NCBI GenBank assembly: GCA_002269645.1
Contig: NIVC01002993.1
Coordinates: 75,451 to 139,450 of the forward strand
Reading direction: 5' to 3'
Length of the DNA stretch: 64,000 bases
Origin: Macrostomum lignano
Taxonomy: Eukaryota
Below the pieces are notes generated by a model. The model made no database searches, had not been told where the DNA came from, and saw only the letters and a list, made by a program, of their open reading frames with translations. The position numbers and the translations under genes are program-made. This document shows, in pieces, positions 1 to 5,859 of the stretch (the first letter of the stretch is position 1; each line of letters starts with the position of its first letter).

Positions 1-615
1 CTCTCCTCTTCTCCCCTTCTCTCCTCTCCCTTCTCTCTCCTTCTCCCCTTCTCTCCTCTCCCCTTCTCTCCTCTCCCCTTCTCTCCTCTCCCCTTCTCTC
101 CTTCTCCCCTTCTCTCCTCTCCCCTTCTCTCCTCTCCCCTTCTCTCCTCTCCCTTCTCTCCTCCCCCTTCTCTCCTCTCCCCTTCTCTCCTCCCCTTCTC
201 TCCTCTTCTCCCCTTCTCTCCTCTCCCCTTCTCTCCCCTTCTCCCCTTATCTCCTCTCCCATCTCTCCTCTCCCTTCTCTCCTCTCCCCTTCTCTCCTCC
301 CCCTTCTCTCCTCTTCTCCCCTTCTCTCCTCTCCCCTTCTTTCCTCTCCCCTTCTCTCCTCCCCTTCTCTCCTCTTCTCCCCTTCTCTCCTCTCCCCTTC
401 TCTCCCCTTCTCCCCTTATCTCCTCTCCCCATCTCTCCTCTCCCCTTCTCTCCTCTCCCCCTTCTCTCCTCTTCTCCCCTTCTCTCCTCTCCCCTTCTCT
501 CCTCTCCCCTTCTCTCTTCTCTCCTTCTCTCCTCTTCTCCCCTTCTCTCCCTTTCTCCCTTCTCTCCTCTTCTCCCCTTCTCCCTCTTTCTTTCCCCTCT
601 TCTCCCCTTTCTCCT
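1..615. repeat. CT-only degenerate tandem repeat
   Basis: ctctcctctccccttct-like units, inside the complemented block. Confidence 0.9.
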
Positions 616-907
616 CTCCTTTTTCCCACTTTGTCTCCCTCTACTTCTGTCTTATAATTCTTTTGACTTCGCGTAATTACTCTATGTCTTTTTTTCGAAA
701 TCTTTTTCTCTCTTTTATGTTTCCTTATAGTTGTTCTGTTCTCTACCCTGAGGCCCTTTAGAATTGCTACCCGAGAATTTTGCTAAGAGTCAAGACCTAA
801 TCTGTCTCGCAAATACGCGTTTGGCAGACCAAGGGTTTGGGTGTAAACTATGAGCTAGACAAAACGTATTAAGGTTCTGCCGCGTTAGTGTTTAAAGTCC
901 CAAAAAA

Positions 908-1101
908 AGTTACAGGCGGCGCAGGAGCCGGCGGAGGCGCTGGCGGCGGGGGCGCAGGCGCGGCGCGGGGGACGGCGCGGCCGGCGGGCCGACCGGGGCT
1001 GCTTTGGCCTATAGGAATCAGAGTTTGTTCGGGCGGTCCAGCAACAGCGTCTTTTACGTCGGCCAGTCCATCGGGACGCCGAGCGAACTCGGCGAGACGA
1101 A
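908..1101. CDS. TOP3B: TOP3B exon 8 (last CxxC plus RGG tail), same backwards-read orientation
   Basis: Reverse read from 1101: TTATTTCAG|AAG CAG gives KQSGSSEPQGYLTGCIFCDNDLAGLFETKDIRFRRGQPGGRRGRGRG. A 1-nt shift is then needed to reach GRGGGGRGGGRGRGGH-TGA (910-908); the unshifted frame ends at 799. Confidence 0.85.
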
Positions 1102-1344
1102 GACTTTATTGCTCGTTTCCCAATCCCACCGCCACTCCGGCCGCTCCGCACCGCAGTAGCGCACAAAAATTTATTTTATTGTGTTTGCGCGCGTTTTCGT
1201 AGCGCTTCGGATTAATTCCGTCTCGAAGATTTTCCGAAGGGCTCAATCTTTAACAGACGAAAGCCACTCGTTCGGCGTAGTCCTGACGTCTTCTATTAAT
1301 TTGCCGTTTCTGCTGATTTCTACTGCTGTTTCCTCTTTCTCTCC

Positions 1345-1964
1345 CTATCTATCTATCTATCTATCTATCTATCTATCTATCTATCTATCTATCTATCTAT
1401 CTATCTATCTATCTATCTATCTATCTATCTATCTATCTATCTATCTATCTATCTATCTATCTATCTATCTATCTATCTCTCTATCTATTTATCTCTCTAT
1501 CTATCTCTCTATCTATCTATCTATCTATCTATCTATCTATTTATCTCTCTATCTATCTCTCTATCTATCTATCTATCTATCTATCTATCTATTTATCTCT
1601 CTATCTATTTATCTCTCTATCTATCTCTCTATCTATTTCTCTATCTATCTATCTATCTATCTATCTATCTATCTATCTATCTCTCTATCTATTTATCTCT
1701 CTATCTATCTCTCTATCTATCTATCTATCTATCTATCTATCTATCTATCTATCTATCTATCTATCTATCTATCTATCTATTTATCTCTCTATCTATTTAT
1801 CTCTCTATCTATCTCTCTATCTATCTCTCTATCTATCTATCTATCTATCTATCTATCTATCTATCTATCTATCTATCTATCTATCTATCTATCTATCTAT
1901 CTATCTATCTCTCTATCTATTTATCTATCTATCTATCTATCTATCTATCTATCTATCTATCTAT
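1345..1964. repeat. (TATC)n microsatellite
   Basis: Direct observation. Confidence 0.95.
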
Positions 1965-2516: not shown

Positions 2517-3346
2517 GACCAATCTCTTGTCAGCTTGGGCTAATCGTAACGTGGATCTTGTGACTAGTCCGTCGTGCCGGTCAAATCACTGCGTTAACAG
2601 GTGGAACTCGGGCTGTAGCGTGACTAACGTATCGTGAAATTTAAATCCGCCTCGTCACCTTAGGTGTTGGTTATGCGGCCTAACCGTCCGCCGCGTCGGC
2701 AGCTACGGCAATCTGACCTGCCTGACGCCCGTCCAGCCCACCGACGTGACTAACGTCGGCGACGGAAAGAAGTATAGGAGCTTACCGCCTAATCGCATCG
2801 TTATGCCCGTGTTACCCTTCGAGAAACTTAAGCACGGGACTCAGGTATCATGATTAAGCTTTAGCAGGTTCCCTGTAAACTCGAGGAACATGACGGCTTA
2901 TCTCGGGTAGACCCCGTCTAACATTCACAGCAACGTTACGCTCGTCACGTCGGCGACCCCGGCCCACCGTTGATTAAAGTATATCGCGAACGTGAACGGC
3001 GTGGCTCTGTCGCCGAAAGGCCTGAGCGTGTCGCCTAGCTTGCTGTGGAGTTTGTCCAGCAGGTAACGCCTTTACACGAGGTGTTTCATCGCTTTGAACC
3101 GGCTTTTCTACAGGTTACGCACGAAGTTATGCCGAAACATTAGCCGAACCGGTGCTCGCTACTCCAAGTCGACGAGAAGCTGGCGGCTCGCGTAGACGCC
3201 GTCCCGGTCGAGAAACAGCTAGAAGAGCATCGGTACGTGGTCGTGCTACGGGTCGAGGCAACCGTAGTCGAACGCCGGCCCGTCGTCGACGTGTATCAAG
3301 GCGAGGTACTACAAGACTTACACGTGGCCCTACGACCGCAGGCACG
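2517..3346. CDS. TOP3B: TOP3B exon 7 (end of core plus Cys-rich Zn-ribbon region), encoded only when the + strand is read backwards without complementing
   Basis: Reverse read 3346->2517: GGCAG|GC ACG GAC GCC gives (G)TDASIPVHIQNIMERNYV...CGKCKRYMKL...LHCSHCNDTYNLPQ...CPLDDFELVLW...CPYCYANPPF...FSNQ|GTGAGC. 830 nt with no stop. Phase 1 matches the exon 6 donor. Confidence 0.93.
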
Positions 3347-3392
3347 GACGGCCAAAACCCCGTTCCCTCGCGCACCGTCAATCTCACCTACG

Positions 3393-3683
3393 TGTCTGTC
3401 TGTCTGTCTGTCTGTCTGTCTGTGTATCTGTCTGTCTGTGTATCTGTCTGTCTGTCTGTCTGTCTGTCTGTGTATCTGTCTGTCTGTGTATCTGTCTGTC
3501 TGTCTGTCTGTCTGTCTGTGTATCTGTCTGTCTGTGTATCTGTCTGTCTGTCTGTCTGTCTGTCTGTCTGTCTGTCTGTCTGTCTGTCTGTCTGTCTGTC
3601 TGTCTGTCTGTCTGTCTGTCTGTCTGTCTGTCTGTCTGTGTATCTGTCTGTGTCTGTCTGTCTGTGTCTGTCTGTCTGTCTGT
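3393..3683. repeat. (TGTC)n microsatellite
   Basis: Direct observation. Confidence 0.95.
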
Positions 3684-5859
3684 AGTATCTAACCTTAGGA
3701 TTTACATGAAATTTATTTTGGGCATTTACATTAAATACACTTAAGAGACTCTGCTTTGACTTAATCTTCATTTCTATTTTAGCTCTTTTTGGCAAGAGAA
3801 TTGTTTTAGTGCACTGAAAATCCAAGAGTTTCCTGTAGGCCCTGCCTACCTGCAAGAACTTTGCACTCGTTAATTTTAGAATCAGTTCCCGTCGCCTCGC
3901 GGGCACTGTTGACGCGCCCTCGGCATCGCCCTCTCCCCCGTCCTGTTGTCTGAGTTTTGACGGTTCAAACCTTACGATCTTCTTCAGCCGCGCCCTGAAA
4001 CTCCATTGATTTCAAAAACAATCTGTGGGTGCGTGAGAATTTATTTATTTTTACCTTTGGGGTGCCAATTCCTCTCTGTTTCTTGGCGAAACTCTGTGGC
4101 TACCTCGGTCAAACCGAGGCCTCTTCCCCCCCCCTATTTGATCTATTTCGATCAGAGCGAAGGCGGTACGGTTCCTTAAGATCTTACTCTAATACCTCAC
4201 TTCATTAGCAGTAAGGAAAGTCAGAAGTTTATATAAATTCGGTCGTGTTTTTTACCTGCTCCGAAACGAAAGTATTCTGGATTTTAAAATCTCGAAGGAT
4301 CTAAGAACTTTTAAAACTCCTTCAGTTTGTCCCACATGTCGCCGGGACTGATAGTTTAGCAGTCTGTACATGTGAGAGACACAGAACCCCCGACCGGGAG
4401 TACCGACACTGAGCGTACTGTCGCGGAACCGTTAAATAGTTAGAAAAGCCTGGGTCTTTATACTTCATATCCTTATTTTTCTAATATCGCCTGACTTATG
4501 ACGAAAAAACTTAAGACTAATAATCTATAACGCGTAAAATAATTAGTTCTAATCATCTGTTTAGGTCTAAAGATAAAAATCAGTAGGTACGTCGTTTGAA
4601 ACTGGGTGGATGCGTAACTTCTTTTAGTCATAAAAAAGATCAGACAGATGCGCGAATTATTTTTTTTGCTCGGTTTTCTCTGCTGTACATGTTGACGGCT
4701 GTTTCTATGGTCTACTACTCAGTGAGCGACCAAGTGACTCCAACATTTTGAGCCTCGTTAAGAAGAATTGACTGTTCTTTTAGCACGGTATGGCATAACG
4801 TGTCGCCGAAAGATGCCTGCCTGCGTGAAGATAAACGATGATCGTCTCCACCTGTCTGTCCAGAACTTGACGATTTGTAAAGGGTAAGTGTTAAGAAAGG
4901 TTAATCCGTCAACTCCTTTAAAGGGTCGTTGCGTTGCCGGAACCGAAAAGAAGAGGTGAGAGCTGTGGCAGCGTTGACGGGTGTGTGACCGCGGATAAAA
5001 ACCTACAAAAGAAAGTAGTTGTATTTGGTAGGGTCTGTCCTCATAGGTTTTATGAAAATCATCTCTTTTTAGCGCGGCCTTTAGTTCGCTTTTATCTCGG
5101 CCCCGCTTCTCACGTCGCACGTGTCGTCAGACTGTAAGGTAGTATGGTTTTTTCAGAGTAAAACAACCACCCAACAGCAGCGTTGGTTCCGAATCCGGAC
5201 CTGAACTTCTTCGCCTTTTTTCCCCACACCACTCTCTCTCTCTCTCTCTCTCTCTCTCTCTCTCTCTAGAGCACTGTTTGATGACATCTTTTAGACGGCG
5301 TAGAGGAGTGACGTAGGCCAGATCGTGCTCCAAATCGGTCGCAGTTGTTTTCGCCGTAATCTTAGGGCTAGACAAGAATCATCATATTGTCAGAAGATAA
5401 TACGATAGGCTCTTTCTGTGGTATTTGGTTGTGTACTGGGTCGGCTTGCAAATAACGTGCGCGAACGTTTTAACCGCTGCCCACACATTAAGGGCTGCGA
5501 ATATTCACGTTGTGCTCCAGCTTCTACAACCGTTTCGTCCGTCTTCCCTCACACGATAATAACGCTAGTGTGCTGATCTGGCCGTCGAAATATTGGAATT
5601 TGACAACCTAAGTCCTAAACAGAAGTCAAGTAGGCCGACCTCGACCTCGGAAAAGATGTTGATCAGACGATTGCCAAGCATAAATTAGCCAAGTAGCATT
5701 AATCTATATTTAGTTGGCGAAAGCAGTTTTGCTTCACCCATTGGCCTAGACTGCCAAGCTGTGACGCTACAAACATCTTTCATTTGGTCTACATCAACTC
5801 TCAACTTTCGCATACAATGTATTGTATAGCCAGAGTTAATTCCCAAATCAAAAGTTTGA

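Follow-up and report, generated by a model that had tools for sequence, protein, structure and literature searches.

A complement-only block in a Macrostomum lignano contig, very probably a strand-sense artefact, and the TOP3B gene that it breaks

The first 5,604 bases of the window (the whole stretch of DNA analysed here, comprising the final 64,000 bases, record positions 75451-139450, of the 139,450-bp contig NIVC01002993.1 from assembly Mlig_3_7, GCA_002269645.1) very probably stand in the record as a base-by-base complement without reversal, that is, as a strand-sense artefact that arose in assembly or post-processing and carries no biology. A complemented but unreversed block had been described in the first-pass annotation of this DNA and is real: the backwards reading of the TOP3B gene, the splice phases, a dispersed repeat, the dinucleotide bias and the alignment to paralogous contigs all agree on it. 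Its interpretation as a data artefact rather than biology is also strongly supported, by paralogs of normal orientation, by intact exons and splice sites and by a truncated annotation. At this place the DV1 worm itself almost certainly carries a third TOP3B copy of the ordinary kind, as judged by the paralogs, the integrity of the gene and the chemistry of DNA.

TOP3B across the block

Complementing the block in place yields a collinear eight-exon TOP3B gene (Table 1) in which seven of seven introns are GT..AG and the exon phases are consistent; GT..AG in every intron together with phase agreement was obtained only after such in-place complementing, which restores collinearity because the order of features is kept within the block. 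The splice sites and the exon 6/7 phase given in the first-pass annotation are thereby confirmed, as is its stop-free exon 7: read in reverse-only sense from 3346 to 2517, frame 2 gives 276 amino acids without a stop, matching human TOP3B residues 511-717 with E = 9.5e-100, so that the reversed string does translate and align to TOP3B. The acceptor of exon 7 is cAG|GCACGG at 3348-3346, its donor is G|GTGAG at 2516-2512 and the join with exon 6 reads ATC G|GC ACG (I-G-T). The last part of the topoisomerase core and the zinc ribbons of TOP3B are encoded by this exon, whose translation is identical throughout to the corresponding part of P0233, a TOP3B protein of M. lignano, whilst the coding part of exon 8 contributes a GC[IV]FCD motif and an RGG-rich tail.

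Table 1. Coordinates of the TOP3B exons, the complement-only block and associated features in the window
Feature	Position	Strand	Remarks
TOP3B exon 1	36076..36309	-	ordinary orientation; ATG 36309-36307
TOP3B exon 2	34282..34470	-	ordinary orientation
TOP3B exon 3	31148..31315	-	ordinary orientation
TOP3B exon 4	26822..27105	-	ordinary orientation
TOP3B exon 5	12524..12913	-	ordinary orientation
TOP3B exon 6	10195..10478	-	ordinary orientation; CDS of PAA53969.1 ends inside, at 10223
TOP3B exon 7	2517..3346	-	830 nt; sense strand right to left, uncomplemented
TOP3B exon 8, coding part	908..1101	-	same backwards reading as exon 7
Complement-only block (very probable)	1..5604	.	NIVC01002410.1 matches only its plain reversal; mirrored dinucleotide bias; negative log-likelihood ratio
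Junction zone	5605..5618	.	normal orientation from 5605 on, by comparison with NIVC01002410.1 and NIVC01000807.1
Dispersed repeat, copy in block	4325..4414	.	same-direction match to 52501-52589 when plainly complemented, and only then
Dispersed repeat, normal copy	52501..52589	+	partner of 4325-4414

Residues 1-724 of the repaired model aligned with human TOP3B residues 2-717 (1046 bits), and comparison with P0233 gave 839 identical positions out of 846; P0233, which is 99% identical to the repaired model, exhibits the domains PF01751, PF01131 and PF23546. By its sequence, the repaired gene is predicted to encode DNA topoisomerase III beta (TOP3B), a type IA enzyme with a Toprim domain, a Topoisom_bac core, the TOP3B zinc ribbon and an RGG-rich C-terminus. 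Protein searches with exon 7 alone or with exons 5 and 6 listed only matches up to about 1.75 times the length of the query, and among the matches listed identity reached at most 62% for exon 7 and at most 56% for exons 5 and 6; the M. lignano proteins were found only when the full-length TOP3B model served as query. The exact 857-aa and 893-aa TOP3B sequences (see below) are absent from the protein collection, and the protein database was found to contain no Logan-derived ORF of M. lignano for exon 7. An intronic retrotransposon carries a pol ORF that is likewise not on record.

Relative to both paralogs, exon 8 is without one G at 963|964, which shifts the TGA at 910-908 out of the reading frame of the sequence as it stands: starting from the acceptor at 1101 in phase 0, the frame as written runs to a TAA at 801-799 and the protein has 893 aa. 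With the G restored the protein has 857 aa, the same as P0233 counted from its Met, and it is only then that the RGG tail becomes readable, due to the frameshift at 963|964. The first-pass annotation had given a final exon from 1101 to 908 that completes a protein of about 857 aa; the acceptor and the phase stand, the length is reached only once the G is restored, and the in-frame TGA does not hold for the sequence as given. A G-run frameshift in exon 8 was also observed in the normally oriented contig NIVC01000807.1.

Paralogs, composition and the junction

Around 70% of the M. lignano assembly occurs in three paralogous copies (PMC10733133). The two paralogs of the present locus are found on NIVC01002410.1 and NIVC01000807.1, both of which carry the homologous 5.6 kb normally and collinear with the flanks. 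From window position 45848 down to 5614, NIVC01002410.1 aligns in the ordinary minus-strand sense; its bases 27844-33422 then match window 5604..1 in the plain-reversed database only, as a single HSP of 98.365% identity over 5,627 columns, and no match of this contig to window 1-5604 was obtained on the ordinary strand. The alignment passes the junction without loss (from 27841 to 27844 of NIVC01002410.1), and NIVC01000807.1 is of normal orientation over the junction and over exons 7 and 8. Fourteen substitutions in the block are its own, with two common to NIVC01002410.1 only and one common to NIVC01000807.1 only: the 14 own substitutions indicate that the block is the sequence of this copy and was not pasted from a paralog. 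The divergence of the block from its paralogs is equal to or below that of the flank and, taken together with the intact ORF and splice sites, this means that the block behaves as ordinary paralogous DNA under a text transformation. A chimeric join with a paralog switch at the junction was looked for and none was seen. Two further observations concern the neighbouring and related proteins: the TAF7-like protein downstream of TOP3B in the paralog, derived by splicing, is PAA58108.1, whose cluster has one member from one contig, and P0356, a protein that is not assignable to any one paralog, is possibly this TOP3B copy from an earlier independent assembly.

The inverted dinucleotide bias noted earlier for the block was found again with each measure: log2 CG/GC is +0.34 in the block vs -0.70 elsewhere in the window, log2 (CA+TG)/(AC+GT) is -0.22 vs +0.17, and the Markov log-likelihood ratio is -73 to -139 bits in the block, with +74 bits for the held-out segment 5671-8000. 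All 2-kb bins outside the block were positive in this ratio except for a satellite at 32-34 kb that is masked for the most part and aligns normally to NIVC01002410.1. The dispersed repeat that had been put forward as an independent check of the sense of the block likewise proved sound, with 87.8% identity over 90 nt (E = 4.5e-24) between the complement of the block copy and the normal copy (Table 1); this pair is the sole non-low-complexity match among the same-direction complement matches in the window.

Leftwards the block extends to window position 1 (record position 75451 of NIVC01002993.1), and its left end lies beyond the window; the contig has at least 5,604 wrongly written bases, the last one at record position 81054. 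The block can equivalently be described as a reverse-complemented piece that is reversed but without complementing. Alignment to the two paralogous contigs sets the junction at 5604|5605 (range 5604-5613), and the position of about 5670 proposed in the first-pass annotation is hence not upheld. Markov log-likelihood, which relies on composition, gives a switch at 5669-5671 with a 100:1 interval of about 5474-5720, and this breakpoint was dropped in favour of the one from homology. Across the junction, NIVC01002410.1 and NIVC01000807.1 alike read ...TGTTTAGGTTCAGTTTAAGG..., and the window reads ...TGTTTAGGACTTAGGTT as ordinary reverse complement followed by CAGTTTAAGG... in reverse-only sense. 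Within the junction zone, at 5607-5618, 7 nt are duplicated (+ strand aaCCTAAGTcctaaac vs aacctaaac in the paralogs); this extra copy is unique to NIVC01002993.1 among the three copies and is separated by 2-14 nt from the point at which the orientation changes.

The deposited record and the origin of the error

Bases 75673-121786 of NIVC01002993.1 equal window 46336..223 with 100.000% identity over 46,114 bases, with 0 mismatches, 0 gaps and the junction included; the identity denotes agreement with a copy of the GenBank record that may itself be the source of the window. The TOP3B protein deposited for this contig, PAA53969.1 (P0354), is a 'partial' model of 516 aa that ends 28 nt short of the end of exon 6. 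It carries the diagnostic residues N44 and V83 of this copy and is without the zinc-ribbon and RGG C-terminus, both of which are present in the models of the paralogs; the exons missing from it are present base for base 6.8 kb away, in unreadable sense. Given that no aligner or gene finder reads the block, transcript-based annotation stops near the end of exon 6, and the C-terminally truncated TOP3B call that had been predicted from the DNA is thus found in PAA53969.1. The truncated annotation dates from 2017 and provides independent support for the defect having been present already in the submitted sequence.

These data also bear on where the block could have come from. An alteration of the file after download, whether as a planted or an accidental edit of the window with the public record being normal, was an alternative offered in the first-pass annotation and finds no support: whilst the block begins at window position 1, as a window-level edit might, the window is the end of a longer contig and can naturally begin part-way through a longer block, the record matches the window over the junction with no mismatch or gap, and the 2017 annotation on NIVC01002993.1 already stops at the end of exon 6. 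We consider such an edit extremely improbable. Still further from credibility is a block that is real in the DV1 genome, in which the plus strand of at least 5.6 kb would be the ancestral plus strand complemented but not reversed. The sequence does stand in the deposited assembly; however, for a real segment a mirror-order copy would have to be synthesised de novo, by an unknown process, and the perfect ORF, the splice sites and 98.4% identity to the paralogs have been kept. Due to strand polarity every real inversion is a reverse complement, and we know of no replication, recombination, inversion or transposition process that gives a complemented but unreversed segment.

A piece in the opposite orientation that was flipped by 'reverse' without 'complement' would give the block as deposited. 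The published pipeline consisted of Canu 1.4, followed by Pilon 1.20 and SSPACE 3.0 (PMC5730564), and we lean slightly towards an error that was already present when Pilon ran. An origin before Pilon would be favoured by the junction, which has no N gap and at which a normal end and a complement-only end could not overlap-merge as a string match. The ratio of 1-nt indels to substitutions, 7 vs 15 in the block and 6 vs 52 in the flank (Fisher p = 0.037, with the block including about 1 kb of constrained exon that lowers its substitutions), gives a weak hint in the same sense, as an excess of uncorrected 1-nt indels is expected where short reads cannot map. The exon 8 frameshift is one of these indels, and the hint is weakened further by the exon 8 frameshift of the normally oriented NIVC01000807.1. 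One may speculate that the 7-nt duplication by the junction was left behind by local polishing or by the join itself.

The error may instead have been made in or after scaffolding, with SSPACE 3.0 or a later custom step (orientation fixing, mitochondrial clean-up) flipping a contig by 'reverse' only and then joining it to its neighbour. This is quite conceivable, although we would not choose it: the flipping of contigs is the very operation in which the complement step is forgettable, correct placement combined with a faulty flip gives the in-place collinearity that is seen, and SSPACE was part of the pipeline (PMC5730564). On the other hand, the junction is without an N gap, bases 75673-121786 of NIVC01002993.1 contain no N, and indels of the unpolished 1-nt type are in weak excess within the block. 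SSPACE is not known to merge adjacent contigs without a gap unless their ends overlap exactly, which is impossible for a complement-only end.

Comparison with known kinds of error

An ordinary inversion misassembly resembles the present case in that a sharply bounded wrong-sense block stands in a contiguous record and breaks a gene model, but such an inversion, being a reverse complement, can still be read on the opposite strand, and its internal order is inverted. Here, the block is not the reverse complement of its homolog and exons 6, 7 and 8 run leftwards in order; DNA and protein matches are obtained only after plain complementation or reversal, and the k-mer statistics are mirrored in the block only. 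In the literature, complement-only blocks were found reported only as deliberate decoys, with no published bug of this kind found. Reversed, non-complemented genomic sequence serves Dfam as a deliberate negative control (dfamseq-rev), for which k-mer discrepancies and low-complexity self-similarity to reversed sequence have been noted (PMC3531169); both features are also seen in the block. The transformation is the same in both cases, with true homology lost and composition and low-complexity features kept, yet the decoys are labelled and kept apart, whereas the block bears no label, is part of a GenBank WGS contig and has an effect on annotation. 'Partial' models at gaps or contig ends share the C-terminal truncation of PAA53969.1, but the block has neither a gap nor a contig end.

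Biologically the block is without consequence and its value is one of database quality control: the reference assembly of the Macrostomum community contains at least one stretch of at least 5.6 kb that is unreadable by aligner, gene finder and repeat masker, and the truncated PAA53969.1 is a consequence that it has already produced. Should the fault lie with a program and not with a one-off script, Mlig_3_7 and similarly built assemblies may contain further blocks of this kind. As around 70% of the assembly is triplicated (PMC10733133), such blocks would show up in a dust-masked blastn comparison of the assembly with the plain reversal of itself. A likelihood scan of the CG/GC type finds them even without paralogs, which makes their detection cheap.

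TOP3B and the complemented block

By tblastn, six upstream exons of TOP3B were placed on the window's ordinary minus strand, and the segment following exon 6 was found only in a reversed copy of the window; the queries were TOP3B fragments and a human TOP3B sequence, the latter serving for exon location only. When window 1-6000 was translated in all four text orientations, a clean open frame of 276 aa was obtained solely from the plain reversal of 3346-2517, matching human TOP3B residues 511-717 (E = 9.5e-100): the exon that the first-pass annotation had read backwards is indeed there. 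We assembled an 8-exon coding sequence with the block (window 1-5604, written as the complement without reversal) complemented in place. All introns of this model exhibit GT..AG and all phases are consistent, with the exon 6/7 join proposed earlier (ATC G/GC ACG) fitting these phases. Residues 1-724 of the repaired model form a single alignment with human TOP3B 2-717 (1046 bits), and P0233, a Macrostomum lignano TOP3B protein, is 99% identical to the full-length model.

Coordinates of the TOP3B exons and of the intron 4 insertion (window positions)
Feature	Position	Strand or reading	Remark
TOP3B exon 1	36309-36076	ordinary minus	
TOP3B exon 2	34470-34282	ordinary minus	
TOP3B exon 3	31315-31148	ordinary minus	
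TOP3B exon 4	27105-26822	ordinary minus	
TOP3B exon 5	12913-12524	ordinary minus	
TOP3B exon 6	10478-10195	ordinary minus	
TOP3B exon 7	3346-2517	in block, read right to left uncomplemented	
TOP3B exon 8	starts 1101	in block, read right to left uncomplemented	
Direct repeats of intron 4 insertion	20321-21348 and 24529-25556		99.9% identical
ORF between direct repeats	21580-24318	minus	912 aa; RVT_1 and RNase H domains

In case of exon 8, one G fewer is present in GCGCGGGCGCGG, between 964 and 963, when compared to both paralogous loci (L001, NIVC01002410.1; L003, NIVC01000807.1). The unrepaired frame bypasses the TGA at 910-908 and stops at the TAA at 801-799, giving 893 aa; restoring the G affords an 857-aa product with the tail ...RGRGGGGRGGGRGRGGH, resembling P0233 counted from Met. 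The 857 aa given by the first-pass annotation are the expected product of the locus (G restored) and not that of the string as written. The G missing at 963-964 shifts the RGG tail out of frame. L003 exhibits another, different one-nucleotide G-run difference in exon 8 (L003 34680-34700); the same out-of-frame tail (...AEAAEDAADIEKNPEICDCAVLE...) is read in P0353 (902 aa), the protein deposited for L003. Either homopolymer errors were left uncorrected in this GC-rich tract, or two of the three copies have truly decayed.

Paralogous loci and the orientation switch

Three-copy paralogous blocks make up about 70% of Mlig_3_7 (PMC10733133), and the TOP3B locus is present there in three copies. From window 45848 down to 5614, L001 runs collinear with the ordinary minus strand, and L001 27844-33422 then aligns to window 5604..1 as plain reversal only (one HSP, 98.365% over 5,627 columns, 21 mismatches). 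L003 is normal across the junction, exon 7, the microsatellites and exon 8, and no reversal matches were found among L001, L003 and L004, each compared with the others. In a three-way comparison of the paralogs no switch between them was seen at the junction, and the block carries 14 substitutions of its own: it is thus this copy's sequence, which rules out a pasted-in paralog.

Both paralogs read ...CTTCTGTTTAGG TT CAGTTTAAGG... at the junction. The window matches them as ordinary reverse complement as far as 5614, a reading that extends over the TT at 5606-5605 with a 7-nt insertion (ACTTAGG), whilst the reverse-only match begins at 5604; thus orientation switches between 5604 and 5605 (range 5604-5613), which is record 81054/81055 (record position = 75450 + window position). 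The breakpoint of about 5670, obtained from composition in the first-pass annotation and also in this analysis, was replaced by this alignment: it lies about 65 nt away, albeit within the 100:1 interval of the compositional estimate itself. This contig alone carries a 7-nt tandem duplication at 5607-5618 (+ strand CCTAAGT/CCTAAAC), 2-14 nt away from the switch and possibly a scar left by joining or by local polishing.

The two other signs reported from the first pass, a repeat matching in the same direction after complementation and an inverted dinucleotide bias, were both recovered. The complement of 4325-4414 aligns in the same direction to 52501-52589 (88%, E = 4e-24), the sole non-low-complexity match of the window with its own reversal, and the dinucleotide asymmetries of the block are mirrored. 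With 8001-64000 as training sequence, a strand-symmetric Markov model gave the block -73 to -139 bits versus +74 bits for the held-out 5671-8000, and no complemented-looking stretch was seen among the other 2-kb bins of the window, one mostly masked satellite excepted. A second fragment of the repeat family of 4325-4414 lies in ordinary orientation at 6654-6722 and 52388-52456 (80% over 70 nt), and L003 holds two related copies at about 29160 and 31440. A purine-rich tandem repeat at 42258-44419 (units such as GGACACAGGGGAGATAATAGA) matches its own plain reversal at ~78%; it was rejected as a second artefact, being a case of low-complexity symmetry to which L001 aligns in ordinary orientation.

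Origin of the block

The first-pass annotation had allowed that the scanned file was altered, which is contradicted on two counts. Positions 75673-121786 of the record NIVC01002993.1 (139,450 bp) match window 46336..223 over 46,114 bases without a single mismatch or gap. The anomaly hence lies in the copy of the deposited record and not in the scanned file, although the window may itself have been taken from the copy compared. Independent support for a defect in the deposit is provided by the annotation: PAA53969.1, the TOP3B protein of this contig, exhibits the diagnostic residues N44 and V83 of the window's copy and is already truncated in the deposit, consisting of 9 upstream residues plus Met1-Leu507, flagged 'partial' and ending at window 10223, 28 nt short of the exon 6 donor. 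In the cluster of P0233 are three NCBI proteins, encoded on three contigs of GCA_002269645.1 (Mlig_3_7), and three UniRef proteins. Window position 64000 is the end of the contig (record 139450), the window being its last 64,000 bases.

That the block is real DNA is so improbable as to be negligible. We know of no process that makes an unreversed complement, every inversion being a reverse complement owing to strand polarity; both defining features of an inversion or ordinary mis-orientation were tested on the block, which shows neither. Instead, it behaves as ordinary paralogous DNA under a text transformation, with the paralogs normal there, and so bears out the artefact proposed previously. 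Dfam deliberately makes decoys with this transformation in order to remove true homology (PMC3531169), the block differing from these in that the decoys are made on purpose. A literature search found no published reports of such blocks in deposited assemblies. Since the block reaches past the left edge of the window, 5604 nt is a lower bound.

Mlig_3_7 was produced with Canu 1.4 (PacBio), followed by Pilon 1.20 polishing (Illumina and RNA-seq) and SSPACE 3.0 (PMC5730564). The mechanism to which we commit is a flip by reversal without complementation, with the program responsible only inferred: when a piece stored in opposite orientation is flipped by 'reverse' without 'complement', the result is exactly an in-place complement. 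SSPACE would merge two ends without a gap only on an exact overlap. A plain SSPACE join as the source of the junction is argued against by the absence of an N gap and because a normal end and a complement-only end cannot overlap exactly. The block may already have been present before polishing: reads cannot map to it, and PacBio-type errors would then be expected to remain. One-nucleotide indels relative to substitutions are 7/15 in the block versus 6/52 in the flank (Fisher p = 0.037), and the exon 8 frameshift sits in the block; the case is nonetheless weak, since part of the block is exon sequence under constraint and a separate G-run frameshift occurs in L003, whose orientation is normal.

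Repeats and genes around TOP3B

Intron 4 of TOP3B contains an LTR-retrotransposon-like insertion (20321-25556); at this site L001 has a single repeat copy (L001 17434-18752), and this explains some of the gene-length difference between TOP3B copies. The introns and the upstream region are filled by satellite arrays, with copy numbers varying among the paralogs: large short-period arrays with strong strand skews lie at 15687-20030, 28987-31080, 45057-47682 and 10512-12495, and alignments to self and to the paralogs show offsets of ~22, ~45, 16 and 32 nt. Nested in intron 6 on the opposite strand is an annotated 137-aa gene (8097-8609, +), without a Pfam match and conserved at each of the three paralogous loci. 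Upstream, TOP3B is neighboured by a MATH-BTB gene (about 40373-46336, -), annotated with 507 aa on this contig versus 406 aa on both paralogs, a further gene-model difference between the copies.
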